From positions 59,706,001-59,770,000 of the forward strand of contig NC_043010.1 of the NCBI RefSeq assembly GCF_006345805.1: 64,000 bases of DNA. Direction: 5' to 3'. This document shows, one piece after another, positions 2,600 through 59,300 of this stretch (within the stretch, counting starts at the first letter, position 1; each line of letters starts with the position of its first letter). Below the pieces are notes generated by a model that worked only from the letters and a program-made list of their open reading frames with translations, ran no database searches and was not told the origin of the DNA. The DNA comes from Octopus sinensis. Taxonomy: Eukaryota. The position numbers and the translations under genes are program-made.

Positions 2600-5500
2600 A
2601 TGCAGTTGTTTCTGTGTGTTTTACTGACTTTCTTCCACTGTTCTCTAAGTGAAGATATCACATATCATGTTAAAGAAGAGAATAGTCCCTATACCTATGT
2701 AGGGGACATTGCTACTGACTTACAGAAATCAGACAGCTCCTTCTTAAAGAATAAGGATTTAATTACATTTAGTCAACTACAGCAAAAGGGAGAACAGTTG
2801 TTCAATGTGACGAGAACAGGTAAACTGTACACTGTTGAGACATTGGATGCTGAGTCTGTGTGTAGTTATGAGAAAGAATGTTTTGAAATCGTTAAAGTTG
2901 CAGTTCACAAATCCAAGACATTTATGAAGATCTTAAAGATTAAAGTCATCATAGAAGACATCAATGACCACCAACCTGAGTTTCCTAATGAAGAAATCAA
3001 ACTGATCTTTGGAGAAGGAGACAGAGATGGTATGAAGAAACCCATACCTAATGCCATTGACAAGGATATGAGTCCAGAAAACAGCTTAATTACTTATGAA
3101 TTAGATGGTGGAGATAACTATTTTTCATTAAGTGTTTCCAAAGAAGATGATGGATTATCAACATTAGAAATTATATTAGAAGAGAAATTAGATAGAGAAA
3201 AGAAGGACGATTATGATATTGAAGTCATTGCTAAAGATGGAGGAACTCCACCAAAACAATCTGTTTTAAATGTGAAAATATCTGTGGAAGATCAAAATGA
3301 TAATAAACCACAATTTTCTCAACGTATCTACAATGTTTCTATAGAACATAAACATAAAAAGACTATTCCAGTAGTCACATTATCTGCCAGTGATTTAGAC
3401 ATTGGCAGGAATGGTAAAATATCTTTCTATTTCGGTCGAAAAACAGATGCTAAAATGAAAGAATACTTCCATCTAGATGAAAATTCTGGGAAATTATTCT
3501 TAGAAAAACCTTTAAATCTGGATATAAAAGAGTCATTTAAATTGTATGTAAAAGCTAAAGATAATGGTATGCCTCCTCTCAGTTCCATAGCAACGGTTAT
3601 GGTAAATGTTATCAACCAACACAACAATCCCCCAAATATTGATGTGAACTTTATTTCTACACAGAATCACAACACAGCTACCATTCTGGAAGACATCAAA
3701 GTTGGTAGTTTCATTGCTTATGTGATGGTCACTGACAACGATGTTGGACACAATGGACAGGTGAACTGTCATATCAAAGATGACACATTCAAACTACAGT
3801 CAATGGGATCGAAGGAATATAAAATAGTTCTAAAGAAAGCAGTAGACAGAGAGACACAGGAACATTATCACTTTACTGTGTCGTGTGAAGATAAAGGATT
3901 ACCTGCTCTGAAAACTGATAAAGATCTGTCAATCCAAGTGTTGGATGTGAATGATGTAGAACCACACTTTACGAAAGACACATTCAAGTTCCTTACCTAT
4001 GAGAATGACAAAGCTAATTTCCCTATTGGCTTTATCAATGCTACAGACCCAGATATTGGTAAGGGAGGTGAATTGTCTTATTCTCTGAGAAATAAACAGC
4101 AATATCGTCTGCCATTCCAGATTATCAACTCTGGCTTTATTTCAACAAACCAGTCTTTAGACAGAGAACACAGAGATTTCTATGAGTTTGAGGTTTTTGT
4201 GAAAGACAATGGAAGCCCATCTCTGAATAACACAGTGAATGTTGAAGTGGAAGTATTGGATAGAAATGATAATGCTCCATATTTTACATTTCCTAGTGTT
4301 GACCCTTTCACTCTTAATGTCCACTATCATCCGCAAAGTAAGAACGACATCACAGTTCTGAAAGCATCTGATATAGACAGTCACATGAATGCTTTTCTCA
4401 GGTACGAAATCGTTTCAGGTAACGAGAGACAGTTATTTAAACTAGACTCGTTCACTGGTGTGTTATCTTACTCTCGCACAGTTTACCAAAACGATGCCGG
4501 ATCATATGAGCTTGAGTTTGTTGTGAAAGACAGTGGTACTCCAGTTCTGTCAGCAACAACTAGTGTGTCTTTGACACTGACTGTTAGTAACAAGACGTCA
4601 CCAATGTTCACAGCTGTGCACCTACCAAGTGATAACACAATAGATGCGACATTGTTGATTATCATTGTAGTAGCAGCTGTGATAGTATCTATAGCTATTG
4701 TGGTTTCTATAACCCTGTGTATTGTGAGATGTAACAATGTGAGAAATAGCTCATCTGAAAGAACTGCAGAAGAGAAACAGGCATACCAATGTCGCAATGA
4801 GATGAGACAGTTGATCTATCAAGGTAACAACAGTGTACCTGTGATGTCAGGTAATCGAGGAGAGATGTCAGACAGATATGGTCATTCGAGGAGCCATTAC
4901 TATCCTGAAGACTGGAAGACATCGACAATGAGCAGAACTCTTCAAAAGTCTACAAAGGTAAGCTAATGTATAATTAAGAATGATTTTACTAAATGTTTTA
5001 TGTTTGACAATTATGGTTTTGTTGACCAATTTTATGGAATATTTTAGATTGTAAGTCTTCTAAAGATAGATTATTTCTCATTCAGAAAATACAATTCCTG
5101 GTATGGTGATGAATATTTTTTACTGTATTGATTTATTTATGATTATTTCTGTCTGTAACTTGTAAAATGATAGGATCCCAGACAACTTGGGGGGAAACCC
5201 CTCAGTAAAAACTATTGAGATAATTCTCTTGAGTCTGATGGTGAAGACAGCATGCCAAACTCTGCATCTCTTTTGAAACCAACATTGCATTGGAAAAACA
5301 GTCATGCATGCACCCATGCACACACATACACACACACACATATACGCATACACAGATTCCAAGCTTACATTATCCTTCCAGAAAGAAGTCCCTGAAAGGC
5401 CATAAATATTTTCCTTAATCTCCCATATCTCATATGAATCACTTGGTTTAATCCTTAATCCTCAAACTGTAACTCTCGGGAATCTCTGACTTCACACATT

Positions 5501-8500
5501 GACTTACATTTGCTTACATTTATTTTACAGCAGAAATACAGTCAACCGATTGAGGTGACATCTTATGGAGACAACAGACCATCTTCTCACTATCCCACTG
5601 ACACACTGGCCAGTCGTAAGAGCAGTGGACAGTGCTGGAGTGAGCGGTCAAGCAGACAGTATGAAGAAATACCAGCAATGTCAGGTAAAACAATCTCATT
5701 CATTTATTTTTTTATTATTACCAGTGGTACACAATGGAGTGAACCCTAAATAAAGCACAGGATTTTGATGACATCAATTTTTTTATATATTCAATCCAGA
5801 ACGCGGCTAACATTTACATGAATTAGTAAGGATTATCACTTTAAGATGACCTTCAATGTTTGTGGACAACACACAGTTGTCCATTTGTTTTGGGCTCAGT
5901 GTTTCATCGCGTGCTCAACTACATATATTCATATTGTTATAAACTTAGCTTTATTACAATTTGTAATAAAGAACATGGAATAATTACATGATGGTCCATT
6001 TCATCAGGTGATGATGGTGGCACAACGGCAGCAGTGGTCTCCATCCAACACGACCTCATCAAGTTGAAAGATTGTAGTAAAGAATCTGATCTTACATTTC
6101 CCCCCCAGCATAAGGTCCTTCTCATTTATGCATAAACCTGCATCTTTTTGCCAGTTTCTGTATGGCCTGCAACATTCAGATTTTTTCTTCTTGATATTGA
6201 AATAAGTTGCATGTTTTTTCACATTCCAGATGTGTTTGTATAATATTGTATTCTTCTCTTCTAAATGTCTGAAGAAAGACGTATAATTGAACTTTCTGTA
6301 GACTTTGTACATGGTATTAAGACTTAGTTTGATGGAAGTGACTTTTGCTTCATATTTGCTCATTGCAACTTTTGTCTTTCTCAATGTGCAATCAATTTAG
6401 ATTAATTTGCTTGATTTTCTATGTTATGAGATTTGTTTCGTTGTGATTACAGTTCAGCATCTTGCTAGCTTTTCTGTAGTTTCCACATCTATGTATTTCT
6501 TATAGCGCATCTGTGTGTGTGTTGCTGTGGGACATCTTTCCTTTGGTGCTCTTGTGTTGTTTCCCATAGCTGGTTGTCTGGGAGTTCCTGATCTCTCTGG
6601 CAGGGACTAGCCTGTCTCATTCTTCTCACTGCTATTTCCTCAGACAGCCCCGATGGCGCTCTACACCCACACTTGTTATAAACATGCCTATTCTCTTTGG
6701 TGTTAAGCAATGCCTGCAATATTATTATATTGTATCAACCAACCAGAGATTCCTGCTGGGAAGGCAGATTCTACCTTTGCATAGTAAGAAATTTATAAGG
6801 AAATATAGACCATTGTGTGGAGAGTGCAGTGAATTTAGGTAGGTTAATTAATGAGTAAAATAAATGGGATTTTGAGAGAATTAATTATTTGTGCTGTTAA
6901 GTAGAAAAATAACTTATTTTTATTTAGGAAGTTTTATAAAATGAAGATTGTGTGATAATTAAGTAGTGGACCTTTTAATTAGGTTGTGATGTGATTTTCT
7001 CCTTTCCTGTGTCTGAAAGATGTATGATTAAAATAAACTTTAAATTTATCTTCTACTATACATATATCCGCCATTCACATTTTCACCATCTTCTCTCTCT
7101 TCTCCCTTACTCCTCACTTCCTTCAACTGGGGTAACTATGTATTTCCTTTACCTCAAGACACCTCCCTCAGTACTATACCCCACCCCTGCTGAGTGGTCT
7201 TGTCTTGGTGACCTCATCAAGTACCCAGTTCGAAAAGTACTCACTTTGCTAAGTAACCAGTACACTTTGGAAAGTGGTTGGCATTAGGAAGGGCATCAAG
7301 CTATAGAAACCAAAGCAAGTGCAGTCTTCTGACTTGCCAGCTGTTGTCAAACTGTCCAACCCATGCCAGCATGGAAAACAGATGTTGCTTAATGATGATG
7401 ATTTAAGTTTGGTTCGGTAGAGGTGACATCTGTTCTGTATGTGCTCATTTCAGCATTACAGGATTGAGGAGGCATGGATTTGTTTCTGCATTTGGATTTA
7501 GCATTGGTAATTTCGTTGGTTTACATGCTATGAGATTCTCCACATCAGAAGTAATGGTTGATAAATGTAGAGCAATTAGGACTAGATTTTAGCCATATAT
7601 TAATTATGACATTTAATAAAAAGGAGTGTGTGGACCAGATGTTGTTCAGGTATCTTTTCTTAGTAATAGATGATGAAGTTTTCAGAATATATATAAGATC
7701 TATGTTTGATTCTACTAGCTTCTAATGCATTATGAGAGACCATTTGAAGATTACTTAGTTTTTGAATGACAAATGAAACTTGAAGTAACAATATATTATA
7801 ATATATTAAACATGCAATATGTTAGTTACCTGGCTGCACCCCCCCACACACACACACGCAAAGACCTATCAATAGATGCACAAATGTACATATCATTTCA
7901 TAAGGGTCTACATAAATATGTACACACCCTGAAGACATATTTATCTACTTTGTTTATCACACACACACATTTTTAGATTATAATTTTTTGTGTTCATAAT
8001 AGATTTGCTTTGCACTTGTCTTATCTGACTGTTCCATTTTAAACCCTTAGAAGATGTTATTTGTGGATGCTCTCCTCTTTTCAGTCTATATAGCATCTAT
8101 TATTAACATCAACACTTCTCTAAGTTGAAATGGGATTATTTTGCCTGTAACGACATTTGTGCCAATCAAATTGAATTCAGTCAATTATAATTATTATAGC
8201 GATAAGTTAAAAATATACCCACAAACCCTTTTCCCCACAAGTTAAAGCATAGCTTACATTGCTGACATCTCGTCAGTTGTTCATTGTAATGCTTGAGGGT
8301 CTAATTGTGTTGTCAGATATCATTCTTTTGTGGTTGTTATTTTTATAGATCACTGACTACACATAAAATGATTGATTTCTAATGTCAGTGAGTCAATACT
8401 TATTGTCTCCATGAACTATGTAGTAAGTTTATTTGATATATATATTTGTATATGTGTGTTTCAGGAATCTATGGTGGTGCCCCACCCGATGTATCAAGCA

Positions 8501-8586
8501 CCAGTGAGAGAGACCATTACCAAGACAGATATGTGAAACCTCCAGAGAGACAGTTACCTTCAACACCAGATGTTGTTGTCAGTTAA
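2600..8586 (+). CDS. PCDH: Protocadherin G1 (6 EC + TM + cytoplasmic tail), join(2600..4957,5531..5684,8465..8586), 877 aa; exon 1 lies upstream of the window
   Basis: Signal peptide MQLFLCVLLTFFHCSLS; cadherin motifs DINDHQPEF, LDRE, DQNDNKPQF, DVNDVEPHF, DRNDNAPYF; EC1 Cys-X5-Cys (CSYEKEC); TM LLIIIVVAAVIVSIAIVVSITLCIV. Acceptor tttcag|2544, donor AAG|gtaag after 4957, acceptor cag|cag at 5531, donor G|gtaaaa after 5684, acceptor tttcag|8465. Phases 0 and 1 join in frame to ...PDVVVS*. Symbol is family-level only. Confidence 0.93.
5990..6400 (+). mobile_element. Possible highly degenerate CR1/L2-type reverse transcriptase remnant
   Basis: Fragments translate as DD...IQHDLIKLKDC and TLYMVLRLSL, weakly like LQxDLxxLxxW and LYxxLVRPxLEY; many stops. 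Confidence 0.3.
6480..6720 (-). mobile_element. RTE-clade LINE C-terminal fragment (degenerate)
   Basis: ORF 6489..6719 reads ALLN..RHVYN..LSEEIAVRRMRQASPCQRDQELPDNQLWETTQEHQRKDVP, matching the RTE C-terminal pattern ALNISWxxHxTN..I..RRLRxAGHCxRxxE..LWxPxHGxRxRGRP. Confidence 0.65.
7255..7403 (+). mobile_element. Partial non-LTR 3' end / SINE with (GAT)n tail
   Basis: gtggttggcattaggaagggcatc...tccaacccatgccagcatggaaaac...gatgatgat, same family as 38775..39033. Confidence 0.55.
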
Positions 8587-12263: not shown

Positions 12264-15200
12264 ATGTTGTTGTATCTGTGCATTTTACTGACTTTCTTCC
12301 ACTGTTATCTAAGTGAAGATATCACATACCATGTTAAAGAAGAGAATATTCCTCATACCTATGTAGGGGACATTGCTACTGACTTACAGAAATCAGACAG
12401 CTCCTTCATAAAGAATAAGGATTTAATTACATTTAGTCAACTGCAACAAAAGGGAGAACAGTTGTTCAATGTGACGAGAACAGGTAAACTGTACACTGTT
12501 GAGACATTGGATGCTGAGTCTGTGTGTAGTTATGAGAAAGAATGTTTTGAAATCGTTAAAGTTGCAGTTCACAAATCCAAGACATTTATGAAGATCTTAA
12601 AGATTAAAGTCATAATAGAAGACATTAATGACCACCAACCTGAGTTTCCAAAGAAAGAAATTACTCTAAGTTTTAGGGAAGGAGACAGAGATGGTATGAA
12701 GAAACCCATACCTCATGCTATAGACAAGGATATGAGTCATGAAAACAGCTTAATTACTTATGAATTGATGAAAGATAATGGACATTTTTCATTAAGTGTT
12801 TCCAAAGAAGATGATGGATTATCAACACTAAGAATTATTTTGGAAGACAAATTAGACAGAGAAACGAAAGACAGTTACAATATTGAAGTCATTGCTAAAG
12901 ATGGAGGAACTCCACCAAAACAATCTGTTTTAAATGTTAAAATATCTGTGGAAGATGAAAATGATAATGCACCGCAATTTTCCCAACGTGTGTACAATGT
13001 TTCTATTGAACATAAACATAAAAAGAATATTCCAGTAGTCACATTATCTGCCAGTGATTTAGACATTGGCAGGAATGGTAAAATATCTTTCTATTTCAGT
13101 CAGAAAACAGATGCTAAACTGAAAGAATACTTCCATCTAGATGAAAATTCTGGAAAGCTATTCTTAGAAAAACCTTTAAATCTGGATATAAAAGAGTCAT
13201 TTAAATTGTATGTAAAAGCTAAAGATAAAGGTATGCCTCCTCTCAGTTCCATAGCAACGGTTATGGTAAATATCATCAACCAACAAAACAGTCCTCCAAA
13301 TATTGATGTGAACTTTATTTCTACACAGAATCACAACACAGCTACCATTCTGGAAGACATCAAAGTTGGTAGTTTCATTGCTTATGTGATGGTCACTGAC
13401 AACGATGTTGGACACAATGGACAGGTGAACTGTCATATCAAAGACGACACATTCAAACTACAGTCAATGGGATCAAAGGAATATAAAATAGTTCTAAAGA
13501 AAGCAGTAGACAGAGAGACACAGGAACATTATCACTTTACTGTGTCGTGTGAAGATAAAGGATTACCTGCTCTGAAAACTGATAAAGATCTGTCAATCCA
13601 AGTGCTAGATGTGAATGATGTTGAACCACACTTTACGAAAGACACATTCAAGTTCCTTACCTATGAGAATGACAAAGCTAATTTCCCTATTGGCTTTATC
13701 AATGCTACAGACCCAGATATTGGTAAGGGAGGTGAATTGTCTTATTCTCTGAGAAATAAACAGCAATATCGTCTGCCATTCCAGATTATCAACTCTGGCT
13801 TTATTTCAACAAACCAGTCTTTAGACAGAGAACACAGAGATTTCTATGAGTTTGAGGTTTTTGTGAAAGACAATGGAAGCCCATCTCTGAATAACACAGT
13901 GAATGTTGAAGTGGAAGTATTGGATAGAAATGATAATGCTCCATATTTTACATTTCCTAGTGTTGACCCTTTCACTCTTAATGTCCACTATCATCCGCAA
14001 AGTAAGAACGACATCACAGTTCTGAAAGCATCTGATATAGACAGTCACATGAATGCTTTTCTCAGGTACGAAATCGTTTCAGGTAACGAGAGACAGTTAT
14101 TTAAACTGGACTCGTTCACTGGTGTGTTATCTTACTCTCGCACAGTTTACCAAAATGATGCCGGATCATATGAGCTTGAGTTTGTTGTGAAAGACAGTGG
14201 TACTCCAGTTCTGTCAGCAACAACTAGTGTGTCTTTGACTCTGACTGTTAGTAACAAGACGTCACCAATGTTCACAACTGTGCACCTACCAAGTGATAAC
14301 ACAATAGATGCGACATTGTTGATTATCATTGTAGTAGCAGCTGTGATAGTATCTATAGCTATTGTGGTTTCTATAACCCTGTGTATTGTGAGATGTAACA
14401 ATGTGAGAAATAGCTCATCTGAAAGAACAGCAGAAGAGAAACAGGCATACCAATGTCGCAATGAGATGAGACAGTTGATCTATCAAGGTAACAACAGTGT
14501 ACCTGTGATGTCAGGTAATCGAGGAGAGATGTCAGACAGATATGGTCATTCGAGGAGTCATTACTATCCTGAAGACTGGAAGACATCAACAATGAACAGG
14601 ACACTTCAAAAGTCTACAAAGGTAAGATATATTCGTGTTTACTAAGAAATTCTCTTACTTTTCTATGTATATTTGAATAAACCTCCTTTTTCAAGAAATT
14701 TTATTCATTATGTGGAATTGTGTGAGTCATGTATATCTATTACTATATTCAACCATTGTTCAGTTGTATTTGTTAGATATCTTATTTAATGAATCCTTAC
14801 TGAAATATGTCTGGTTTTTCTAGAAAATAATCATTAGCGAAAATTTGATTATAGAAAGGAAGACAAAGCACCCTTCCAACACTTCCTCATTTCTGATCTT
14901 CACTGTTTTTCATGATAGTCAGAGTATAAACACATATATGCCATTCATTATTTCTTAGTAATGCCTAATATATCAATACTTTCATCATTGATGATAGTGT
15001 AATTATAGATATGAAGATATATTATGATGTGGTAGTAACTACCAATGTGTGATTGTTAATAGCATTCATTAAAATGAAAAGTGAAGCAGTTAATCCAAGA
15101 TGAAGCAAGGTTTCCATTTATGTAGATTGATTTGGCATTATGTGCACTGGTGATATGTATACCCAAACATAGAATGGTTAGGAATACAAGAAGTGCTCTT

Positions 15201-17800
15201 GTTGAAACAAAGAAAGGAGAACTCGTTCCCTGCAAAACAGATGCTTATTCATTTGGCTCTGTTTGAATGTCTGTTTCTCATGTATCTCATTTATGTGTCC
15301 CTTTCCACAGGAATTAATAACCATTCAATAAACAAATGCGTCCACAGTATGTGTTGTTTTGGCAGTGTAAAGATGTAAAACTTGTGAAATTATAATGGAT
15401 GCTTGAGCACATGGTTCTTCTTTCTAGTCTAAGGACTGAGAAATCTTAGCAACACATTTTAGAAGTTCAGCTGATGATAAACATATAAAATTGTCAGTAT
15501 CATCTGATCATAGATATGGAACTAAATTGTTAATATCATAAAACAAGTGTAAATTTAAGTATTACTAAATATTTCATTATCAGTCATATCTTTACATTAT
15601 ATTTTCCAGCAGAAATACAGTCAACCCATTGAGGTGACATCCTATGGAGACAACAGACCATCTTCTCACTATCCCACTGACACATTGACCAGTCGTAAGA
15701 GCAGTGGACAGTGCTGGAGTGAGCGGTCAAGTAGACAGTATGAAGAAATACCAGCAATGTCAGGTAGGATAACAATGATTTGATATTTTCTATTCAGAAA
15801 TACTCATATTCACTCAGGTAGAGGAAATATCTATCTGGCAGTAGAATAGGGAGTCTGTGTGTCTGTATGTGAAGCCTTCTTCTCTGAGGCTCAGATCAGG
15901 GAAAGATTTTCATTTGCAGATGATTCATAAGTGCCTTTGCAGTGATTTCTTCCATTTTTGTGCCAATGTTTATATCAGACAGCGAGTCAAACAAAGCTAT
16001 GTATTAGTTGCAGGTGTTGCTGTCAGAACAGAAACAGATGGAATAGATACCACTTTCCAAAATCCAACCACTCTACCACCCTGAAGTTGTACTTTACTTG
16101 TTAACTTCAGAATAATGGCAGAATCAACATTAGTGGGGTTTGGGCTCACAGTGTAGAGAGCTGAGGCAATAAACTACAAGGTATTTTATCCAGTGCCCTA
16201 ATGATTCTGCCAATTTGCATCTTCCTGTGAGTAATGGGGCTTGATACCTATTTACAGCTGACTGGATTGGATCAGAATTCTTAAGTGCAGATTTCTCTTT
16301 TAGTTACCAACATTTACAAAGGTTTTCAAACATATACTTTAAACATTTTGGCTATGTCACTGTGTTATCTATACATATTGCTTAATACAAGGGCCAGCCT
16401 TCACCTGCAAACAAGAATGGACTGGTAATATGTACTCATTACAACAACATGAAATGAAGTGTCTTGCTTAAGGACATACTGCATGGTTCAGCCTTGGGAG
16501 TGAACCCACGATATCATAATCATGACCTGATCAAATGGGCTGATACCTTCACTGTTTCACATAACCTGTTCATTAATATATGAAGTAAAACCTTATGAGA
16601 AGTGCTTAACTACGTCACCCAATTGTCCGTGCACCATTGAATGACCAGAATCATCACTATCGTGTAGTTGTCTACAATCTTAGGATCTTTTCGGTTTGAA
16701 CGGCAGTTTTTAACATAATTTCTAGTTAACTAAAAAATTTTAAACTTCATATACTGGTAGAATGTGTTTATAAAACATTTTTTTCTCTTGGCTTTATTGA
16801 GAAAATTCTATAGTTTGTAAGATATTTGTGGATTTTTTTCTTCAATTTCTGCAATTTCAACCAATCAAATATGTCCATTGAGTTAAAAAACATTCTGTGC
16901 CGTATGAATATGTCCCTTGTTTAAGAAACAGATTGGGTTTATTTACATTTGTGAAGAAAAAAAGATACCCTTCCTCCCACCCCTAACCCTAACCCTAAAA
17001 CAGATTGAAATGCAATAGATCGATACTAGGGTCATAATTATGAGTGACAATTTCATATGACACCGCTAGAAAAAACTGCCGTTCAAACCAAAAAGATCCC
17101 AATCTCATTGTAATGTAAAGTTACATGATATAGTTTTATTGTATTAGAATGAGACCTTAATCAGCTTTGACTGAGCAGGACTGTACCAAAGATAGGACAT
17201 GTGAGGATAGATATGGTTTTAGCAACAACACATTACTATTACCAATTTTACTTAAACAAAATAGGAAACTTGAGCTATATGGAAACCATAGCTGTTATTA
17301 AATAGGCTGATTTTTATTTAAGCCTTCCATTCGGATATGATTTGGGTTGGTAAAGTTTTAGGATATTGTAAAATATCAAGATACTATCTCAATGTTGTTG
17401 TTATTATTATTATTGTTATTATTATTATTATTATTATTGTTATTATTATTATTATTATCTCTGCCTTCACTAAGACAGAGTTTCAATTGTGTTTGTTTGT
17501 TTGTCCATGGGCAAGATATCTCAAGAACCACTGGATGGATTCAGATAAAGCTTTCAGAGATGTTTGGCCTTGTGTCTAGCATGAACTACATAGATTTTGG
17601 GGTCAATCTGGTACCGGACAAGGATTCTGGATTATTTTTCCTGTTTTTTTTACTTAAGTTTTGAGAGGGGTTGAGTTCATTTTTAGTATTCTCGTTTGTG
17701 AGAACAGTTGAGTTTATTTCAGTTATTCTCATTTTAAAAATCATCGATGGCTAATTGTTGAGAGGACGTTGGTGTTGCCTTTGCTGAGGTTTGCGCTCTC

Positions 17801-17849
<49 letters not shown>

Positions 17850-18084
17850 CATTATTATTATTGATTTATATTTTAGTTGTGTGAGTGTTATATATAATGT
17901 CAGCAAAATGCTTATTGTGTATGTAAATTATATAATAAGTATATTTGATATGTGTGTTTCAGGAATCTATGGTGGTGCCCCACCTGATGTATCAAGCACC
18001 AATGAGAGAGACCATTACCAAGACAGATATGTGAAACCTCCAGAGAGACAGTTACCTTCAACACCAGATGTTGTTGTCAGTTAA
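12264..18084 (+). CDS. PCDH: Protocadherin G2, join(12264..14621,15610..15763,17963..18084), 877 aa
   Basis: Same domain motifs and splice phases as G1; exon-2 acceptor ttccag|12208; 5' exon donor after 9509. Confidence 0.93.
16380..16550 (-). mobile_element. CORE-like SINE fragment
   Basis: aagtgtcttgcttaaggaca...gggagtgaacccacgat is the reverse complement of a tRNA-derived head plus CORE-like segment. Confidence 0.4.
16683..17099. mobile_element. Non-autonomous DNA transposon (MITE), probably hAT superfamily
   Basis: 29-bp TIR ggatcttttcggtttgaacggcagttttt / aaaaactgccgttcaaaccaaaaagatcc (1 mismatch); 8-bp flanks caatctta / caatctca resemble a TSD; internal (CCCTAA)3 at 16981..16998. Confidence 0.8.
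17394..17458. repeat. (TTA/TTG)n microsatellite
   Basis: Directly visible; source of the spurious poly-Leu/poly-Ile ORFs. Confidence 0.95.
17459..17800 (+). mobile_element. Helentron-associated (HINE/DINE-like) non-autonomous element between two (TTA)n tracts
   Basis: Starts ctctgcc.., contains gtttgtttgtttgtcc, ends gctgaggtttgcgctctc; same architecture as 32083..32852. Confidence 0.5.
17801..17862. repeat. (TTA)n microsatellite
   Basis: Directly visible. Confidence 0.95.
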
Positions 18085-40217: not shown

Positions 40218-43200
40218 ATGTTGTTACACCTGTGTGTTTTACTGACTTTATTCCACTGTTATTCAAGTGAAGATATCACATACCATGTTAAAGAAGAGAA
40301 TATTCCTCATACCTATGTAGGGGACATTGCTACTGACTTACAGAAATCAGACAGCTCCTTCCTAAAGAATAAGGATTTGATTACATTTAGTCAACTGCAA
40401 CAAAAGGGAGAACAGTTGTTCAATGTGACGAGAACAGGTAAACTGTACACTGTTGAGACATTGGATGCTGAGTCTGTGTGTAGTTATGAGAAAGAATGTT
40501 TTGAAATCGTTAAAGTTGCTGTTCACAAATCCAAGACATTTATGAAGATCTTAAAGATTAAAGTCATAATAGAAGACATCAATGACCACCAGCCTGAGTT
40601 TCCTGAGAAAGAAATCACAGTAATCTTTGGTGAAGGTGATGGTAGAGGTATGAAGAAGGCTATACCTAATGCTATAGACAAAGATATGAACCATGAAAAC
40701 AGCTTAATTACTTATGAATTAAAAAAAGATAATGGACATTTTTCATTATCAGTTTCTAAACACACCGATGAATTTTCAGCATTAGAGATTATTTTAGAAG
40801 AGAAATTAGACAGAGAAAAGAAGGACAGCTACAATATTGAGGTCATTGCTAAAGATGGGGGAACTCCACCAAAACAATCTGTTTTGAATGTTAAAATATC
40901 TGTAAAAGATGAAAATGACAACAGACCACAATTTTCTCAGAGTATCTACAATGTCTCTATTGAACATAAACATAAAAAGAATATTCCAGTAGTCACATTA
41001 TCTGCCAGTGATTTAGATATTGGCAGGAATGGTAAAATATCATATTACTTTGCCAGGAAAACTGCTGAGAAAATGAAGAGACATTTTAATTTAGATGAAA
41101 ATACTGGGAAATTATATATAGCTACAACTTCAAAAATTGATAAGGATGGATCATTTAAATTATACATTGAAGCCAGAGATGATGGCACATCTCCTCTCAG
41201 CTCCATAGCCACTGTTATGGTAAATGTCATCAATGAACACAACAATCCCCCAAATATTGATGTGAACTTTATTTCTACACAGAATCACAACACAGCTACC
41301 ATTCTGGAAGACATCAAAGTTGGTAGTTTCATTGCTTATGTGATGGTCACTGACAATGATGTTGGACACAATGGACAGGTGAACTGTCATATCAAAGACG
41401 ACACATTCAAACTACAGTCAATGGGATCGAAGGAATATAAAATAGTTCTAAAGAAAGCAGTAGACAGAGAGACACAGGAACATTATCACTTTACTGTGTC
41501 GTGTGAAGATAAAGGATTACCTGCTCTGAAAACTGATAAAGATCTGTCAATCCAAGTGTTGGATGTGAATGATGTAGAACCACACTTTACGAAAGACACA
41601 TTCAAGTTCCTTACCTATGAGAATGACAAAGCTAATTTCCCTATTGGCTTTATCAATGCTACAGACCCAGATATTGGTAAGGGAGGTGAATTGTCTTATT
41701 CTCTGAGAAATAAACAGCAATATCGTCTGCCATTCCAGATTATCAACTCTGGCTTTATTTCAACAAACCAGTCTTTAGACAGAGAACACAGAGATTTCTA
41801 TGAGTTTGAGGTTTTTGTGAAAGACAATGGAAGCCCATCTCTGAATAACACAGTGAATGTTGAAGTGGAAGTATTGGATAGAAATGATAATGCTCCATAT
41901 TTTACATTTCCTAGTGTTGACCCTTTCACTCTTAATGTCCACTATCATCCGCAAAGTAAGAACGACATCACAGTTCTGAAAGCATCTGATATAGACAGTC
42001 ACATGAATGCTTTTCTCAGGTATGAAATTGTTTCAGGTAACGAGAGACAGTTATTTAAACTGGATTCGTTCACTGGTGTGTTATCTTACTCTCGCACAGT
42101 TTACCAAAATGATGCCGGCTCATATGAGCTTGAGTTTGTTGTGAAAGACAGTGGTACTCCAGTTCTGTCAGCAACAACTAGTGTGTCTTTGACTCTGACT
42201 GTTAGTAACAAGACGTCACCAATGTTCACAGCTGTGCACCTACCAAGTGATAACACAATAGATGCGACATTGTTGATTATCATTGTAGTAGCAGCTGTGA
42301 CAGTATCTATAGCTATTGTGGTTTCTATAACCCTGTGTATTGTGAGATGTAACAATGTGAGAAATAGCTCATCTGAAAGAACAGCAGAAGAGAAACAGGC
42401 ATACCAATGTCGCAATGAGATGAGACAGTTGATCTATCAAGGTAACAACAGTGTACCTGTGATGTCAGGTAATCGAGGAGAGATGTCAGACAGATATGGT
42501 CATTCGAGGAGCCATTACTATCCTGAAGACTGGAAGACATCGACAATGAGCAGAAGTCTTCAAAAGTCCACAAAGGTAAGTTTTATTTCAATTATCAGTC
42601 TTGTAGTAAATAGCATTTAATTAAAAATGATCGAGTTTATTACATTATATCAGAATCACTGTTCCTTGATGATTGGTAGTATTTAATTTCCAAATGTATT
42701 TGATATGAAATATTCCATGTTGAAAAATTACTTTCGTGATGTATTGATGAGAAATACATTTTGCCCTGCGCATGTTACAAGTTATTTGATGTTTAATGAA
42801 TCTCTAGCAATTCTACCACAACAAGAATCAAAGATGCTTTCATACGTTGTAGGTTATGAATCTCTTTAATCACAGTCAAAAATGAGTAGACTTAGTAACG
42901 AGTTGACATAGATATTGTTGAAATTGTCTACAGTTATGTGCACTGTCTGAATGAGAATTCAAGGTATATAGCATGTGTGCATGTGTAGGTTCAAATAGGC
43001 TAATAGGAAACAATTGACAGAGAATTGGAAGTTGTGTTGATATTTTTCAATTTTCTCACTTTTTATAAAGTTAAATTAATCCTTTAATGTCTCTGTTTCA
43101 ATCCATCTCATGATAAATGTATCTGGACGTTAATAGTAGACAATTACTGTTTTTATTCTTTATCGAATATGTACACTTCTTTTAATATGGAGTGATAACT

Positions 43201-44076
43201 AATATCACTTGTGTCATCATTGAGTTTTTAGTAATTTCTCTCTTGTTTTATCTTGGAACATTGTCATATTTCAAATAAATTACCTTGTATAAGCGTGTGT
43301 TACATTTTACTAATTGAAGTGATATAATGCATAAGCTGCCCTATTTTATCAGACAGAAACTATTTTATTCAATATTAGATATAGGACTGTCAGTCATAAA
43401 TGTTATCTGTATAATATGTCTTGTTACTATTGCATTTTACAGCAGAAATACAGTCAACCGATTGAGGTGACATCTTATGGAGACAACAGACCATCTTCTC
43501 ACTATCCCACTGACACACTGACCAGTCGTAAGAGCAGTGGACAGTGCTGGAGTGAGCGGTCAAGTAGACAGTATGAAGAAATACCAGCAATGTCAGGTAA
43601 AACAATTTCATTTACCTATCTTAATTGGTATATTTGTCATTTACCCCAATGATATCTTTTGGAGTGAGCCCTAAACGAACACTATGTTAATTTTATTTAT
43701 TAGTTTAATTGTCATTTGATGTGCTGAAGTTTGTACAGATCTATTGTGTAGTGATGTATTAATTTCTTTATAATAGTTGTTTAGTAGGTTATTGCATAGA
43801 AGAGAAGAGAATATTGACCAAAGCCTGTCAGTAAATACTTATTGTCTTTGTGTACCATACGATAAGTTCAGTTGATGTATATATGTGTTTCAGGAATCTA
43901 ACTACTGGCTATATGAACTATGTAATAAGTATATTATATATGTGTGTGTTTCAGGAATCTATGGTGGTGCCCCACCCGATGTATCAAGCACCAGTGAGAT
44001 AGACCATTACCAAGACAGATATGTGAAACCTCCAGAGAGACAGTTACCTTCAACACCAGATGTTGTTGTCAGTTAA
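40218..44076 (+). CDS. PCDH: Protocadherin G5, join(40218..42575,43443..43596,43955..44076), 877 aa
   Basis: Intact ORF and homologous splice sites; exon-2 acceptor tttcag|40162; 5' exon donor after 36563; extra duplicated acceptor at 43893|43894. Confidence 0.92.
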
Positions 44077-47555: not shown

Positions 47556-50500
47556 ATGCTGCTGTTTCTATGGGTTTTACTCACTTCCTTCCATTGTTCC
47601 CTAAGTGAAGATATCACATACCATGTTAAAGAAGAGAATAGTCCCTATACCTATATAGGGGACATTGCTACCGACTTACAGAAATCAGACAGCTCCTTCT
47701 TAAAGAATAAGGATTTAATTACATTTAGTCAACTGCAACAAAAGGGAGAACAGTTGTTCAATGTGACGAGAACAGGTAAACTGTACACTGTTGAGACATT
47801 GGATGCTGAGTCTGTGTGTAGTTATGAGAAAGAATGTTTTGAAATCGTTAAAGTTGCTGTTCACAAATCCAAGACATTTATGAAGATCTTAAAGATTAAA
47901 GTCATAATAGAAGACATCAATGACCACCAACCTGAGTTTCCTCAGAAAGAAATCACACTTTACTTTGGGGAAGGAGACAGAGATGGAATGAAGAAACACA
48001 TACCTAATGCTATTGACAAAGATATGAGTCCAAAAAACAGCTTAATTACTTATGAACTGAAAAAGGATAATGGACATTTTTCCTTATCAGTTTCAAAAGA
48101 AACAGATGAGATATCAGCATTAGGAATTATTTTAGAAGAGAAATTAGACAGAGAAAAGAAGGACAGTTACAATATTGAAGTCATTGCTAAAGATGGGGGA
48201 ACTCCACCAAAACAATCTGTTTTAAATGTTAAAATATCTGTGGAAGATGAAAATGATAATAAACCACAATTTTCTGAACGTATCTACAATGTCTCTATTG
48301 AACATAAGCATAAAAAGAATATTCCTGTAGTCACATTATCTGCCAGTGATTTAGATATTGGCAGGAATGGTAAAATATCATATTATTTTGCAAGGAAAAC
48401 TGCTGAGAAAATGAAGAGACATTTTAATTTAGATGAAAATACTGGAAAATTACATTTAGCTACATCTTCAAAAATTGATAAGGATGAGTCTTTTAAATTA
48501 TACATTGAAGCCAGAGATGATGGCGCATCTCCTTTGAGTTCCATAGCCACTGTTTTGGTAAATGTTATCAATGAACACAACAATCCCCCAAATATTGATG
48601 TGAACTTTATTTCTACACAGAATCACAACACAGCTACCATTCTGGAAGACATCAAAGTTGGTAGTTTCATTGCTTATGTGATGGTCACTGACAATGATGT
48701 TGGACACAATGGAGAGGTGAACTGTCATATCAAAGATGACACATTCAAACTACAGTCAATGGGATCGAAGGAATATAAAATAGTTCTAAAGAAAGCAGTA
48801 GACAGAGAGACACAGGAACATTATCACTTTACTGTGTCGTGTGAAGATAAAGGATTACCTGCTCTGAAAACTGATAAAGATCTGTCAATCCAAGTGTTGG
48901 ATGTGAATGATGTAGAACCACACTTTACGAAAGACACATTCAAGTTCCTTACCTATGAGAATGACAAAGCTAATTTCCCTATTGGCTTTATCAATGCTAC
49001 AGACCCAGATATTGGTAAGGGAGGTGAATTGTCTTATTCTCTGAGAAATAAACAGCAATATCGTCTGCCATTCCAGATTATCAACTCTGGCTTTATTTCA
49101 ACAAACCAGTCTTTAGACAGAGAACATAGAGATTTCTATGAGTTTGAGGTTTTTGTGAAAGACAATGGAAGCCCATCTCTGAATAACACAGTGAATGTTG
49201 AAGTGGAAGTATTGGATAGAAATGATAATGCTCCATATTTTACATTTCCTAGTGTTGACCCTTTCACTCTTAATGTCCACTATCATCCACAAAGTAAGAA
49301 CGACATCACAGTTCTGAAAGCATCTGATATAGACAGTCACATGAATGCTTTTCTCAGGTACGAAATCGTTTCAGGTAACGAGAGACAGTTATTTAAACTG
49401 GATTCGTTCACTGGTGTGTTATCTTACTCTCGCACAGTTTACCAAAATGATGCCGGATCATATGAGCTTGAGTTTGTTGTGAAAGACAGTGGTACTCCAG
49501 TTCTGTCAGCAACAACTAGTGTGTCTTTGACACTGAGTGTTAGTAACAAGACGTCACCAATGTTCACAGCTGTGCACCTACCAAGTGATAACACAATAGA
49601 TGCGACATTGTTGATTATCATTGTAGTAGCAGCTGTGATAGTATCTATAGCTATTGTGGTTTCTATAACCCTGTGTATTGTGAGATGTAACAATGTGAGA
49701 AATAGCTCATCTGAAAGAACAGCAGAAGAGAAACAGGCATACCAATGTCGCAATGAGATGAGACAGTTGATCTATCAAGGTAACAACAGTGTACCTGTGA
49801 TGTCAGGTAATCGAGGAGAGATGTCAGACAGATATGGTCATACGAGGAGCCATTACTATCCTGAAGACTGGAAGACATCAACAATGAGCAGAACACTTCA
49901 GAAGTCTACAAAGGTAAGCCTTACTTCAATAAACAATCTGTTAGTAAATAATCTGCAATTAACTATGATTTAGCTTCAGTGTTTTATATTTGTGTTTTAT
50001 CCAGTGTTTTATAATTGACATTACGTTTCACTTGACCAATTTTACAGTATTGTTTTGCTTCATAATGTCCAAAATATATCTTATGTATGGTTAAGAAAAT
50101 ACCATTCCTGATATGGTGTTGAATACTTATTTAATTTTTTTTACTGTGATTACTGTTGTCCATTTTTTGTTAGATATTTCATGGCAAATGAAAATCTGAG
50201 AAGACATTTTCCAGGATAATTAGACATCTTTGTATACTTTACAGTCTGTCATTTTTAATATTTGTCAATAGGATTGCATCTGATTTTGTGGAAACTACCT
50301 AGTTAGAACAATTCAAATATCTTTGTAGTCTTTACTTCTGGTGATTAAAGCTCCCAAATCTAACATTACTGTACACACACTGACAGTCTAAACTTGCATT
50401 ATCCTTTCAGGAAGGAATCAATTATAAAAGTTTTGTTAATAATTGTGACTTCAGCTAACTTGTACTGTGTATAATTCTTGTGGGAAATGAAGAAACATAA

Positions 50501-51982
50501 TGTGGGAAAAAGTGATGTCATAGTTTTGTCAGTGGAGGAATGACAGTACTCCTGTCTTCTTACCAGTGAAGGATTAACAAATTTTAGTAACAGCTTCAAG
50601 AAATTTTACTGATTAAATACATATAAAATATTGTCTTTAATATAGAACAAAATAGTCAATACCACCAAAAGCCAGTAAATTTTGTTATTATTACATATTT
50701 TAGTGTCAATCATGAATGTTATGTTTATAGTATGTCTTGTTACTATTATATTTAACAGCAGAAATACAGTCAACCCATTGAGGTGACATCTTATGGAGAC
50801 AACAGACCATCTTCTCACTATCCCACTGACACACTGACCAGTCGTAAGAGCAGTGGACAGTGCTGGAGTGAGCGGTCAAGTAGACAGTATGAAGAAATAC
50901 CAGCAATGTCAGGTAGGATAACAATGATTTGACTTTTCCTATTCATAAATATCCATATTCACATGAAGTAGAAGAAATATCTACCAGGGAATTATAAATT
51001 TGTGTGGCCTTATCTTCACCTGATTCATGGATGGATTAATACTTATTGTAACAGCTTAGTGAATATTCATCAAATATGAAACTATATTAGTGTCTTACTT
51101 TCTACAATGGCACTAAATATATTAATCTGACACCCATTTGCAGCCGATTGAATAAAGAAAGAAATATTCATGTTGTTTACTACCAAATTAAACAGACGTT
51201 TGAAAATATATTATTCTGCTTTATGAGACACTGTTTTGTATTGTCTTTTTAAACCTGGTAAAAGAAGCAAAAATAAATAGAATTCAAAACATGCATGTGT
51301 GTGTGTCTATACACACACACAGAGTAGCTCAATCACTTTCTTGCTTTACACTTATGAAGTGTCATGCTCAAAACTCTCAGCCTGTGAAACACTTTGTAGC
51401 TTCTGGGGATTAAAAATAAAGAATTATGTCTATTGACTTATTACTTATGTAATTTTATGGTAAATGAATGGAATCTTAATTAGTTTTGGGTCAGTAAGTA
51501 AACATATAGCACATGTGAGAGTGCATATGGTCTTAACAACAACCCATTATTGTTACCATGGTAGGAAAGTTGAACAATATGTAAACCAAGGGACTGCTCA
51601 GTATAGACTGATTTTTATTTAACCATTCCAGTCTAAGGCATTATCTTAATAATAATCGTATGATTGGGGTTTGTAATGTTCTGTGATGTTGTAGGATACT
51701 GAGACACGATTTCAATGTAACATCTTTAATTATTGATGTTGTTCTTCATTTTAGTCCATTGAATGTTGTGGACAAAACATTGATTACTAACGACAGTAAA
51801 TACCCATTGACCATATGAACTGTGTAATGAGTTTACTTGATGTATATGTTTGTGTTTCAGGAATCTATGGTGGTGCCCCACCTGATGTATCAGGCACCAG
51901 TGAGAGAGACCATTACCAAGACAGATATGTGAAACCTCCAGAGAGACAGTTACCTTCAACACCAGATGTTGTTGTCAGTTAA
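47556..51982 (+). CDS. PCDH: Protocadherin G6, join(47556..49913,50759..50912,51861..51982), 877 aa
   Basis: Intact ORF and homologous splice sites; exon-2 acceptor tttcag|47502; 5' exon donor after 45020. Confidence 0.93.

Positions 51983-55714: not shown

Positions 55715-55716
<2 letters not shown>

Positions 55717-55750
<34 letters not shown>
55717..55750. repeat. (CA)n microsatellite
   Basis: Directly visible. Confidence 0.95.
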
Positions 55751-55753
<3 letters not shown>

Positions 55754-56306: not shown

Positions 56307-59300
56307 ATGTTGTTACACCTGTGTGTTTTACTGACTTTCTTCCACTGTTATTTAAGTGAAGACATCACATACCATGTTAAAGAAGAGAATAATCCCTACA
56401 CCTATGTAGGGGACATTGCTGCTGACTTACAGAAATCAGACAGCTCCTTCTTAAAGAACAAGGATTCGATTACATTTAGTCAACTGCAACAAAAGGGAGA
56501 ACAGTTGTTCAATGTGACGAGAACAGGTAAACTGTACACTGTTGAGACATTGGATGCTGAGTCTGTGTGTAGTTATGAGAAAGAATGTTTTGAAATCGTT
56601 AAAGTTGCTGTTCACAAATCGAAGACATTTATGAAGATCTTAAAGATTAAAGTCATAATAGAAGACATCAATGACCACCAACCTGAGTTTCCTCAGAAAG
56701 AAATTGATATACATTTCCGAGAAGGAGATGGTAAAGGTATGAAGAAACACATACCTAATGCTATAGACAAGGATATGAGTCCAGAAAACAGCTTAATTAC
56801 TTATGAATTGAAAAAGGATAATGGACATTTTTCTTTATCAGTTGCAAAACAGACTGATGAAATATCAACATTACGAATTATTTTAGAAGAGAAATTAGAC
56901 AGAGAAAAGAAGGACAGTTACAATATTGAAGTCATTGCAAAAGATGGGGGAACTCCTCCAAAACAATCTGTTTTAAACGTTAAAATATCTGTGGAAGATG
57001 AAAATGATAATACACCAGAATTTTCCCAAAGTATCTACAATGTTTCTATTGAACATAAACATAAAAAGAATATTCCAGTCGTCACATTATCTGCCAGTGA
57101 TTTAGATATTGGCAGGAATGGTAAAATATCATATTACTTTGCCAGGAAAACTAGTGAGAAAGTGAAGAGAAACTTCAATTTAGATGAAAATACTGGAAAA
57201 TTATATTTAGCTACATCTTCAAAAATTGATAAGGACGAATCTTTTAAAATATACATCGAAGCCAGAGATGATGGCACATCTCCTCTGAGTTCCATAGCCA
57301 CTGTTTTGGTAAATGTCATCAATGAACACAACAATCCTCCAAATATTGATGTGAACTTTATTTCTACACAGAATCACAACACAGCTACCATTCTGGAAGA
57401 CATCAAAGTTGGTAGTTTCATTGCTTATGTGATGGTCACTGACAATGATGTTGGACACAATGGAGAGGTGAACTGTCATATCAAAGACGACACATTCAAA
57501 CTACAGTCAATGGGATCGAAGGAATATAAAATAGTTCTAAAGAAAGCAGTAGACAGAGAGACTCAGGAACATTATCACTTTACTGTGTCGTGTGAAGATA
57601 AAGGATTACCTGCTCTGAAAACTGATAAAGATCTGTCAATCCAAGTGTTGGATGTGAATGATGTAGAACCACACTTTACGAAAGACACATTCAAGTTCCT
57701 TACCTATGAGAATGACAAAGCTAATTTCCCTATTGGCTTTATCAATGCTACAGACCCAGATATTGGTAAGGGAGGTGAATTGTCTTATTCTCTGAGAAAT
57801 AAACAGCAATATCGTCTGCCATTCCAGATTATCAACTCTGGCTTTATTTCAACAAACCAGTCTTTAGACAGAGAACACAGAGATTTCTATGAGTTTGAGG
57901 TTTTTGTGAAAGACAATGGAAGCCCATCTCTGAATAACACAGTGAATGTTGAAGTGGAAGTATTGGATAGAAATGATAATGCTCCATATTTTACATTTCC
58001 TAGTGTTGACCCTTTCACTCTTAATGTCCACTATCATCCGCAAAGTAAGAACGACATCACAGTTCTGAAAGCATCTGATATAGACAGTCACATGAATGCT
58101 TTTCTCAGGTATGAAATCGTTTCAGGTAACGAGAGACAGTTATTTAAACTGGACTCTTTCACTGGTGTGTTATCTTACTCTCGCACAGTTTACCAAAATG
58201 ATGCCGGATCATATGAGCTTGAGTTTGTTGTGAAAGACAGTGGTACTCCAGTTCTGTCAGCAACAACTAGTGTGTCTTTGACACTGACTGTTAGTAACAA
58301 GACGTCACCAATGTTCACAGCTGTGCACCTACCAAGTGATAACACCATAGATGCGACATTGTTGATTATCATTGTAGTAGCAGCTGTGATAGTATCTATA
58401 GCTATTGTGGTTTCTATAACCCTGTGTATTGTGAGATGTAACAATGTGAGAAATAGCTCATCTGAAAGAACAGCAGAAGAGAAACAGGCATACCAATGTC
58501 GCAATGAGATGAGACAGTTGATCTATCAAGGTAACAACAGTGTACCTGTGATGTCAGGTAATCGAGGAGAGATGACAGACAGATATGGTCATTCGAGGAG
58601 CCATTACTATCCTGAAGACTGGAAGACATCGACAATGAGTCGGACACTTCAAAAGTCTACAAAGGTAAGCCTTACTTTGATTGACTATTTGTTAACAGTG
58701 AATGTTTGTTCAATAATTACATGACTTAAAAGCATTGACAATGAGCAGAAGTTTACCAAAAAGTATGAATGTATGATTTTCTTGTATTTTGTATCAGTAT
58801 TCTCATTGTTATAGAATTTATTTTTAATTACTCGGACATTTTTTATGTGTTCTTTCAGATAACCCCATTTGAGATAATTGAAACAATAAACACCATGATG
58901 ATATTTATATATTTTAAAATTTCAAATTAGTCATCACAATTGTACTTTAGATAATTATATGCAAATGTACTGTTCCTTCTTTACAAGTTTTTAATATTTT
59001 AAATTTTATCAAGTAACATAAACTTTACATAGTATTTATAACCTTTATATAGCAGTTTGTGGATTTAACCATCAGATACATGTAGTTAAAACCCAATAAC
59101 CTCGTGCTGTTTAGATAAAAACCATGTGTTCATATTTTACTGCCATAATATGATGAATGTATATTGCTTACATACACCTGATTACATGGAGAGATAAACA
59201 ATATAGATTGTGAATCATGCTTGAATATTTAAGCATTTATTATCTCATCTTCCACATATTTCTATGCAAATGAATAGACTGCAAGCATTGTAAAACATCT

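Follow-up and report, generated by a model that had tools for sequence, protein, structure and literature searches.

In the clustered protocadherins (Pcdhs) of fugu (Pcdh2 alpha and gamma subclusters), the variable exons encode proteins that share about 80% identity over amino acids (aa) 1-331 and 99.3% over aa 332-777, with the boundary at the junction of extracellular cadherin repeats 4 and 5 (EC4/EC5), lineage-specific homogenisation and a raised GC content at third codon positions (GC3) (PMC1852091). Vertebrate clustered Pcdhs form antiparallel EC1-4 dimers in trans, in which EC1/EC4 provide non-selective affinity and EC2/EC3 provide specificity (PMC5001838). Antiparallel EC1-4 trans dimers are also formed by the delta-2 protocadherins (Harrison 2020, PMC7082078), and this type of dimer has been inferred as the ancestral state of the clustered and delta protocadherins. 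Cephalopods have protocadherins without constant exons (PMC9068888). Here, we describe seven protocadherin genes of Octopus sinensis that lie in a stretch of 64,000 nucleotides (nt) of contig NC_043010.1 (chromosome CM016872.1; positions 59,706,001 to 59,770,000), in the following called the window, and that are named G1-G7 in window order.

The most probable account of these genes is that they belong to an array that evolves in concert, in which an island made up of EC2 and EC3 is kept by selection and, judging by homology with the vertebrate Pcdhs, sets binding specificity. Regional gene conversion in teleost clustered protocadherins was reportedly described by Noonan in 2004, and the antiparallel EC1-4 binding of the mammalian clustered proteins is said to have been worked out by Rubinstein in 2015 and Goodman in 2016.

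Comparison with known systems

As in the fugu and zebrafish Pcdh clusters, large exons are arranged in tandem on the same strand, each divergent on its 5' side (EC1-3) and near-identical, even at synonymous sites, on its 3' side, with a discrete boundary between the two. Homogenisation is lineage-specific while EC1-3 keeps orthology, and GC3 is higher in the converted part, again as in teleosts. An earlier note on this DNA had seen in it a mirror of the vertebrate clustered-Pcdh pattern, a likeness that the 5'-variable and 3'-homogenised variable exons of fugu, with their EC4/EC5 boundary, bear out. Unlike the teleost clusters, the octopus expansion is independent and took place in a mollusc. 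Its units are whole genes with their own cytoplasmic exons and no spliced-on constant exons, a second homogenised block (the EC1 core) confines the variable part of this octopus subgroup to exactly EC2+EC3, and the small downstream exons are kept alike whereas the introns are not. The octopus array is a convergent instance of the known regional conversion of Pcdhs and is solid as molecular evolution. In the cephalopod literature that was searched, no domain-resolved description was found, and gene conversion is mentioned there in general terms only.

With the mammalian alpha, beta and gamma Pcdhs the octopus proteins have in common six EC repeats, homology over EC1-4 (E = 6e-76 to gamma-A9) and a diversity focused in EC2-EC3, next to an invariant EC1 core and EC4. 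They differ in that the genes are not orthologous, no sites with a ratio of nonsynonymous to synonymous divergence (dN/dS, omega) above 1 were detected in EC2-3, and the variable residues showed no enrichment at homologous contact positions in a test by proxy. The closest solved structures are those of the delta-2 proteins Pcdh10, 17, 18 and 19 (6vg1, 6vg4, 6vfr, 6vfu), which also have six ECs; unlike the octopus array, delta-2 genes are single-copy and dispersed, have long conserved cytoplasmic domains and show no concerted evolution. A parallel outside the family is found in the human red/green opsins, where conversion keeps divergence low except in an island at functionally different sites (PMC3924837). 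The octopus island differs from it in that it spans two entire domains (650 bp) and is present in dozens of paralogs, with a functional difference that is presumed.

Variable and homogenised blocks in the seven large exons

A scan of the window for open reading frames (ORFs) revealed seven ORFs of ~800 codons, all on the + strand and spaced by 7.3-10.7 kb. Each contains a large exon of exactly 2358 coding nt that runs from Met to Lys and ends at the donor AAG|GTAAG (7/7 genes). The exons are located at 2600..4957 (G1), 12264..14621 (G2), 21806..24163 (G3), 29508..31865 (G4), 40218..42575 (G5), 47556..49913 (G6) and 56307..58664 (G7), and they align without gaps at 92-96% pairwise identity. Their 786 codons encode a signal peptide, EC1-EC6, a transmembrane (TM) segment and the juxtamembrane region, so that the whole ectodomain and the single TM segment (hydrophobic stretch ATLLIIIVVAAVIVSIAIVVSITLCIV) are contained in one exon. 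The Pfam search returned Cadherin_2 (PF08266, aa 20-100) and five PF00028 cadherin stretches, which together make six EC repeats; Cadherin_C, the classical tail, was not found in this search. Linkers of the DxNDxxPxF type were read off the alignment at aa 119-128, 230-239, 338-347, 448-457 and 553-562. Among solved structures, the best matches were EC1-4 and EC1-6 of delta-2 and clustered Pcdhs, with E = 7.5e-89 for 6vg1, 5.7e-76 for gamma-A9 and ~1e-59 for Pcdh18 and Pcdh19. On these grounds, the identification of the genes as cephalopod protocadherins with six EC repeats was confirmed.

Variation among G1-G7 was found to be distributed in blocks. The first 55 residues (signal peptide and first part of EC1), a region absent from the earlier note, hold 15 variable columns at a synonymous divergence (dS) of 0.33. 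In the EC1 core (aa 56-129; + strand, 2765..2986 in G1, offset +165..+386 in all genes) there is no amino-acid change at all (nonsynonymous divergence, dN, 0), and dS is 0.059; the longer stretch from GDIA to DINDHQPEFP (aa 35-129) has 3 variable columns. EC2 and EC3 (aa 130-345) contain 79 variable columns without any indel (dS 0.45, dN 0.106). This variable block lies, on the + strand, at 2987..3634 in G1, 12651..13298 in G2, 22193..22840 in G3, 29895..30542 in G4, 40605..41252 in G5, 47943..48590 in G6 and 56694..57341 in G7. From EC4 through EC6 and the TM segment to the juxtamembrane region (aa 346-786; + strand, 3635..4957 in G1, offset +1035..+2357 in all genes), referred to as the EC4-end, 10 columns vary (dS 0.047, dN/dS 0.09), and G1-G7 differ from the consensus at 0, 2, 4, 3, 2, 3 and 2 residues, respectively. 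Variable nucleotides make up 32.4% of EC2-3 vs 3.4-3.6% of the two conserved blocks (chi2 = 360, p = 2e-80), and third positions vary at 109/216 codons of EC2-3 vs 42/515 codons of the conserved blocks (p = 3e-35). Introns and 5' flanks have a mean identity of 44-64% with many gaps and are mostly unalignable, although a few gene pairs have long similar non-coding stretches in common.

Most of the pattern had been anticipated in the earlier note, which spoke of seven exons of equal length without indels between 2600 and 58664, about three differences in EC1 from GDIA to DINDHQPEFP, dozens of differing residues in EC2-EC3, near-identical synonymous sites in the conserved domains and introns far more diverged than these domains, all in agreement with the counts above. 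Its figure of at most three substitutions per gene from EC4 onwards applies to six genes and not to the remaining one, which has 4.

The dense variable sites span exon nt 388-1032 (2987-3631 in G1). The switch at their 5' side, at nt 387/388, is positioned one residue past the EC1/EC2 linker (...PEFP), and the switch at the 3' side, at codon 344/345 (...NNPP|NIDV), is the EC3/EC4 linker. As both boundaries coincide with linkers, the variable block corresponds to EC2+EC3. Some variability returns in the last ~35 nt of the large exon, at the end of a block that is otherwise homogenised, and a variable patch is seen just before the donor at aa 775-782 (STM[SN]R[TS]LQK; exon nt 2325-2346, 4924-4945 in G1).

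Gene conversion as judged by a comparison of lineages

A low dS among paralogs could by itself mean synonymous constraint, and lineages were therefore compared. The comparison loci came from O. vulgaris (L002), Argonauta hians (L003, L006, L008), O. bimaculoides (L001) and O. sinensis itself (L005, L007), with GCA_006345805.1, GCA_951406725.2 and GCA_054771915.1 as the assemblies for O. sinensis, O. vulgaris and A. hians, respectively. The O. bimaculoides locus has N gaps in the remainder of the genes and was used for EC1-3 only. The O. vulgaris L002 copies are paralogs and not orthologues of G1-G7, with a minimum EC2-3 dS to a window gene of 0.29.

In the EC4-end, paralogs differ by a dS of 0.047 in O. 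sinensis, 0.042 in O. vulgaris and 0.022 in Argonauta, compared with 0.21 between genera. In EC2-3, paralog dS within lineages is 0.46, 0.64 and 0.89 and approaches the between-genus value of 1.04. The same EC4-end block is carried by paralogs that are only 50-60% identical to G1-G7 in EC1-3. Cross-genus orthologues were recognised by EC1-3 (O. sinensis P0024 and A. hians P0031, dS 0.77; O. sinensis P0030 and A. hians P0027, dS 0.85), and O. vulgaris P0139 and A. hians P0035 form a further pair of this kind. The EC4-end dS of orthologues is 0.22, vs 0.047-0.059 to unrelated paralogs of the same species, even where EC1-3 dS is >1.25. Common substitutions, a 2-aa insertion and a 1-aa deletion mark the block in 24/24 Argonauta paralogs and in no Octopus paralog. 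The nearest neighbour belongs to the other genus for 14 of 55 proteins when EC1-3 is compared and for 0 of 54 with the EC4-end. The genus-wise grouping of the EC4-end, together with the cross-genus orthology of EC1-3, therefore demonstrates concerted evolution.

GC3 in O. sinensis is 0.365-0.380 in the homogenised blocks vs 0.247 in EC2-3, and the corresponding values are 0.363 vs 0.236 in O. vulgaris and 0.336 vs 0.246 in Argonauta. By the criterion used for fugu, the raised GC3 of the homogenised blocks is a signature that fits GC-biased conversion. Within Octopus, the EC4-end dS is weakly correlated with the EC2-3 dS (Mantel r = 0.39, p = 0.045), so that history is partly retained, and its slope on EC2-3 dS is 0.033, against ~0.26 expected without conversion.

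The near-identity of the EC1 core and the EC4-end is thus strongly supported as gene conversion, as opposed to protein-level constraint alone. The strength of the case comes from the wider family and not from G1-G7 alone. A uniform dS along the exon would have spoken against conversion; the observed values (0.45 vs 0.047-0.059) favour it. The earlier suggestion that conversion homogenises the flanking ectodomain has accordingly held up, both in the cross-genus test and in the GC3 excess.

Two further O. sinensis copies at ~59.53 Mb (L005:22050-24401 and L005:28894-31247) are ~72% identical to P0024 over aa 3-541 and 99-100% identical over aa 534-787. Their match pattern indicates nested, 3'-anchored blocks, which comprise EC5/6-TM in some members and EC4-TM in others. 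Both copies may be frameshifted, because their two high-scoring segment pairs lie in different frames. The O. vulgaris protein P0028 (789 aa) is family-like in EC1-EC5 and differs in EC6, TM and tail; it may be a chimeric gene or mark where a conversion tract ends on its 3' side.

Mosaicism and selection in the EC2-EC3 block

Among the informative site pairs of EC2-3, 41% fail the four-gamete test, and the incompatibility is clustered (p = 0.001 in a test like the pairwise homoplasy index). Different stretches group the genes differently: G3, G5 and G7 are set apart from the others at the 5' end and at aa 130-143, G1 and G2 from G3-G7 at aa 178-186 and 267-332, and both G5-G7 from G1-G4 and G6-G7 from G1-G5 at aa 325-340. 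The EC2 start TEEVNIQFSE.DGKG recurs in O. vulgaris and O. bimaculoides, and a close variant, TKQVNLQFSE.DG.G, is present in Argonauta. This recurrence across species shows that old EC2 and EC3 types persist in recombined form. The EC2-EC3 block is a mosaic of old, partly trans-genus types that have been shuffled among paralogs.

The Nei-Gojobori omega of EC2-3 is 0.23, with all pairs among the seven genes at 0.34 or below. Site models of the GY94 type, implemented in house, were fitted to EC2 and EC3 separately, using 18 sequences from 4 species and a neighbour-joining tree per domain with M0 branch lengths. The tree length was ~6.5-7 substitutions per codon, which means saturation. M0 gave an omega of 0.165 for EC2 and 0.176 for EC3, and M1a assigned 72-73% of the sites to omega ~0.1 and 27-28% to omega = 1. 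The earlier note had proposed diversifying selection, which was not borne out at an omega of ~0.17, with no pair above 0.34 and with nothing added by M2a. In the absence of a class with omega>1, recurrent positive selection is unsupported, and the EC2-3 data fit a preservation of old differences, either by selection or by a barrier due to divergence. For mammals, Wu reportedly found positive diversifying selection at EC2-EC3 sites in 2005, and duplicated genes with a divergence peak under conversion are said to have been treated by Teshima and Innan in 2008. In theory, a divergence peak within converted duplicates is the expected signature of selection that maintains differences (PMC3924837).

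Gene structure and extent of the array

The window contains seven complete three-exon genes of 877 codons each. Exon B, a cytoplasmic exon of 154 nt, is located ~0.6-1.7 kb 3' of each large exon and is flanked by a polypyrimidine/AG acceptor and a GT donor (acceptor ...TTTTACAG| and donor G|GTAAAA in G1). On the + strand it occupies 5531..5684 in G1, 15610..15763 in G2, 25023..25176 in G3, 33380..33533 in G4, 43443..43596 in G5, 50759..50912 in G6 and 60356..60509 in G7. The terminal exon C (...GIYGGAPPDV...VVVS*) follows 0.4-3.1 kb further 3', with its coding part, also on the + strand, at 8465..8586 in G1 (TAA stop), 17963..18084 in G2, 26429..26550 in G3, 35504..35625 in G4, 43955..44076 in G5, 51861..51982 in G6 and 63603..63724 in G7. 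Exons B and C are present separately in each of the seven genes, complete with splice sites and stop codon, and no constant exons are shared. As these exons are private to each gene, splicing of the vertebrate type to common constant exons does not apply. Exon B is 97.5% and exon C 98.8% identical among the seven genes; with a paralog dS of 0.12, exon B is less homogenised than the EC4-end.

G6 is identical to XP_036365177.1 (P0001, 877 aa, built from G6's own exons) and G7 to P0121, and G5 is identical to the RefSeq model P0003 except for a false N-terminal extension of that model. P0003 (1012 aa) wrongly fuses a spacer ORF at 37843-38259 to the protocadherin. This ORF and another at 46401-46724 (both +) lie in the spacers upstream of G5 and G6, are paralogous, encode 107-138 aa and are probably remnants of a repeat or transposon. 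Neighbouring family members were located on CM016872.1 at 59.5-59.8 Mb, and the seven genes form part of a large tandem array on this chromosome, which is made up of complete protocadherin genes.

A two-gene periodicity was observed in the 5' flanks (2500-2599, 12164-12263, 21706-21805, 29408-29507, 40118-40217, 47456-47555 and 56207-56306) and in coding nt 1-165. G4 and G6 have a common upstream type (...CACCAAAACAAG ATG), and G3, G5 and G7 have another (...CATCAGGACCAGAG ATG), which G1, G2 and G5 resemble. The periodicity suggests duplication of two-gene units. The 3' untranslated regions and spacers are 95-98% identical over 2.3-2.8 kb between 26382-28698 and 43912-46227 and between 25900-28698 and 34988-37771, whereas those of other gene pairs are only 40-60% identical. 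The high similarity points to recent segmental duplication or to long conversion tracts that extend beyond the coding exons.

Proposed mechanism and alternative explanations

Repeated, GC-biased and exon-limited gene conversion keeps the region from EC4 to the juxtamembrane part near-identical within a genus, and in the G1-G7 subgroup it also covers the EC1 core and, to a lesser degree, exons B and C. The EC2+EC3 pair escapes homogenisation and is bounded by both linkers within a residue or two. In the account that we favour, conversion of EC2-EC3 is presumably selected against, with each paralog's recognition surface being worth keeping, and, once the sequences have diverged, mismatch would also block it.

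Several observations weigh against this account or narrow it. A purely mechanical divergence barrier, without selection, could keep diverged EC2-3 sequences unconverted. The homogeneity is confined to exons as short as 154 nt amid unalignable introns, which is awkward for ordinary DNA-level tracts. The site models yielded no class with omega>1 (likelihood-ratio test of M2a vs M1a 0, p = 1), at a power limited by saturation and recombination. With an evolutionary-coupling table in human gamma-B3 numbering as interface proxy in place of an octopus dimer structure (Nicoludis 2016, PMC5001838), the coupled EC2:EC3 positions are variable in 10/26 cases vs 69/190 elsewhere in EC2-3 (p = 0.50). Between genera, dS amounts to 0.21-0.22 in the EC4-end and to 0.25 in exon B; orthologous EC1-3 has values 3-4 times as high, and the divergence of the block is also well below that of alignable non-coding DNA (59-65% identical between genera). 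Concerted evolution leaves divergence between lineages unreduced, and the block therefore has a slower synonymous rate. Because of this slow rate, conversion explains only a ~3-fold reduction within G1-G7 (0.14 expected, 0.044 observed). Part of the low dS in the block is not conversion, and the block is under unusually strong constraint.

RNA editing has been reported to be enriched in cephalopod protocadherins. Local RNA structure as a source of the synonymous constraint was rejected, as no excess was found in the block in 150-nt windows compared with dinucleotide shuffles, a test that leaves long-range and intronic pairing aside. A cDNA template, which would account for a homogeneity that is exon-only and 3'-anchored, was likewise rejected as the main route of conversion: no intron has been lost, the large exon varies in its last ~35 nt, and the exon B dS of 0.12 exceeds that of the EC4-end.

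One competing explanation accepts that conversion is real and takes the EC2-EC3 island to be neutral, either drifted beyond an identity threshold or rarely reached by tracts and now diverging at relaxed sites, with neither selection for diversity nor a recognition code involved. The omega of ~0.17 with ~28% of sites at omega = 1 and none above, together with variable positions that are not enriched at the interface proxy, would suit such an island, and the conserved linker motifs (DxNDxxPxF) could act as mechanical end points of tracts. However, ~72% of the EC2-3 sites are strongly constrained and EC2/EC3 types persist across genera, so that each EC2-3 variant must be functional and conserved. 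In addition, a 650-bp island flanked by blocks whose homogenisation predates the genus split must at first have escaped conversion, which theory credits to selection, and the same two boundaries recur in O. sinensis, O. vulgaris and Argonauta. A neutral island appears rather unlikely to us for these reasons. We consider it improbable that unequal crossing-over or recent segmental duplication, through chimeric genes, spread the shared 3' block without non-reciprocal conversion. The two-gene periodicity of 5' flanks and 5' coding ends (G3, G5, G7 vs G4, G6), the intergenic identity of 26382-28698 to 43912-46227 and the different copy numbers of O. sinensis and O. vulgaris would be explained by it. 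Such a process would nevertheless homogenise downstream introns and spacers, yet introns 1 and 2 are mostly unalignable and stand beside exons A (3' part), B and C that are 97-99% identical; homogenisation of both the EC1 core and the EC4-end around a divergent island needs patchy tracts.

It is very improbable that conversion played no part and that extreme purifying selection on protein and synonymous sites (e.g. for RNA editing structures or splicing signals) produced the near-identity. The 3-4 times slower synonymous change of the block between genera, its dN/dS of 0.09 and the reported enrichment of RNA editing are in keeping with such constraint, which on its own cannot make paralogs that predate the genus split closer to one another inside a genus (dS 0.02-0.06) than across genera (0.21), nor give every Argonauta paralog identical lineage-specific substitutions and indels. 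Moreover, the GC3 excess fits biased conversion, and the block has no extra local RNA structure. Repetitive loci are prone to assembly or polishing artefacts, and the N gaps of O. bimaculoides fall exactly over the homogenised part of three copies, while several gene models are fused or frameshifted. An artefact is nonetheless hardly credible as the origin of the near-identity, as the same block structure is found gap-free in three independent assemblies (O. sinensis, O. vulgaris, A. hians), the block holds 45 copy-specific variable sites with consistent partitions, and the abrupt change to 32% variable sites within one exon is unlike consensus polishing. Beyond the concerted array with a selected EC2-EC3 island, a wider picture seems possible rather than probable: octopods would have assembled variable/constant protocadherins through conversion in place of splicing, with a uniform EC4-EC6/TM/tail module in nested, 3'-anchored blocks of dozens of whole genes, with EC2/EC3 types older than the genus split being reshuffled into new recognition combinations and with the synonymous slow-down reflecting an added RNA-level or conversion-linked constraint.

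Possible function and implications

By homology with the delta-2 and clustered protocadherins, EC2-EC3 would most likely set homophilic specificity. The invariant EC1 core, EC4, EC5-6, TM segment and tail would provide common affinity, cis-assembly and signalling, and the homogenised block would serve as a 'constant region' that is kept by conversion instead of splicing. All EC1/EC4 positions of the interface proxy (12/12) are invariant, as are the whole EC1-core and EC4 blocks. The combination of a shared EC1:EC4 clamp with a private EC2:EC3 key, as envisaged in the earlier note, is plausible on this analogy. A role of the array as a neuronal barcode is likewise an analogy with the vertebrate Pcdhs and unproven. 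Single-cell data from O. vulgaris give ~19-21 PCDHs per cell, with some members specific to cell types; the near-identical 3' parts make paralog assignment within this subfamily doubtful.

Domain-restricted concerted evolution of Pcdh arrays would have had separate origins in vertebrates and cephalopods and yet the same polarity, with diverse recognition domains at the N-terminal side and uniform domains near the membrane. Such convergence would lend weight to the idea that cell-surface recognition is generally solved by diversity of EC2-EC3 on a common scaffold. G1-G7, which differ almost only in EC2-EC3, are in effect ready-made domain-swap constructs for aggregation assays. Trees of cephalopod PCDHs that are built from whole genes mislead, and EC1-3 is preferable for this purpose, as has been done for fish. 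Short or 3'-biased RNA sequencing reads that fall in the homogenised block or in exons B/C cannot be assigned to a paralog, and counts per cell for this PCDH subfamily therefore need long reads or EC2-3-specific probes.

Annotation problems and repeats

At these loci, assemblies and gene models are collapsed or fused. At the O. bimaculoides locus (CM046614.1:2486270-2518485), a total of 4931 N replace the EC4-EC6 part in three copies, and the 1102-aa 'protocadherin-11 Y-linked' of this species (P0005) is a fusion of two truncated copies. The O. sinensis RefSeq proteins P0130 (4439 aa), P0141 (3535 aa), P0143 (1786 aa) and P0148 ('dachsous-like', 2561 aa) cluster with window genes at 90% identity or above and look like read-through products in which several tandem copies are fused. 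Disrupted members were observed at L006:3517-4205 (A. hians P0031), L002:12749-15099 (O. vulgaris copy 2) and L007:3001-5463 (O. sinensis P0030). Their defects comprise one insertion of ~675 nt in the EC2 coding sequence, which the gene model treats as an intron, one frameshift close to the junction of EC3 and EC4 and one stop or frame break in EC4; these members are pseudogenes or assembly errors.

A short interspersed repeat occurs in three spacers of the window, at 38781-39023, at 54756-55000 and, inverted, at 62220-62376, with 80-86% identity. Trinucleotide microsatellites at 17392-17664 and 17791-18084 in intron 2 of G2 are read as poly-Leu and poly-Ile ORFs, the second of which enters exon C.

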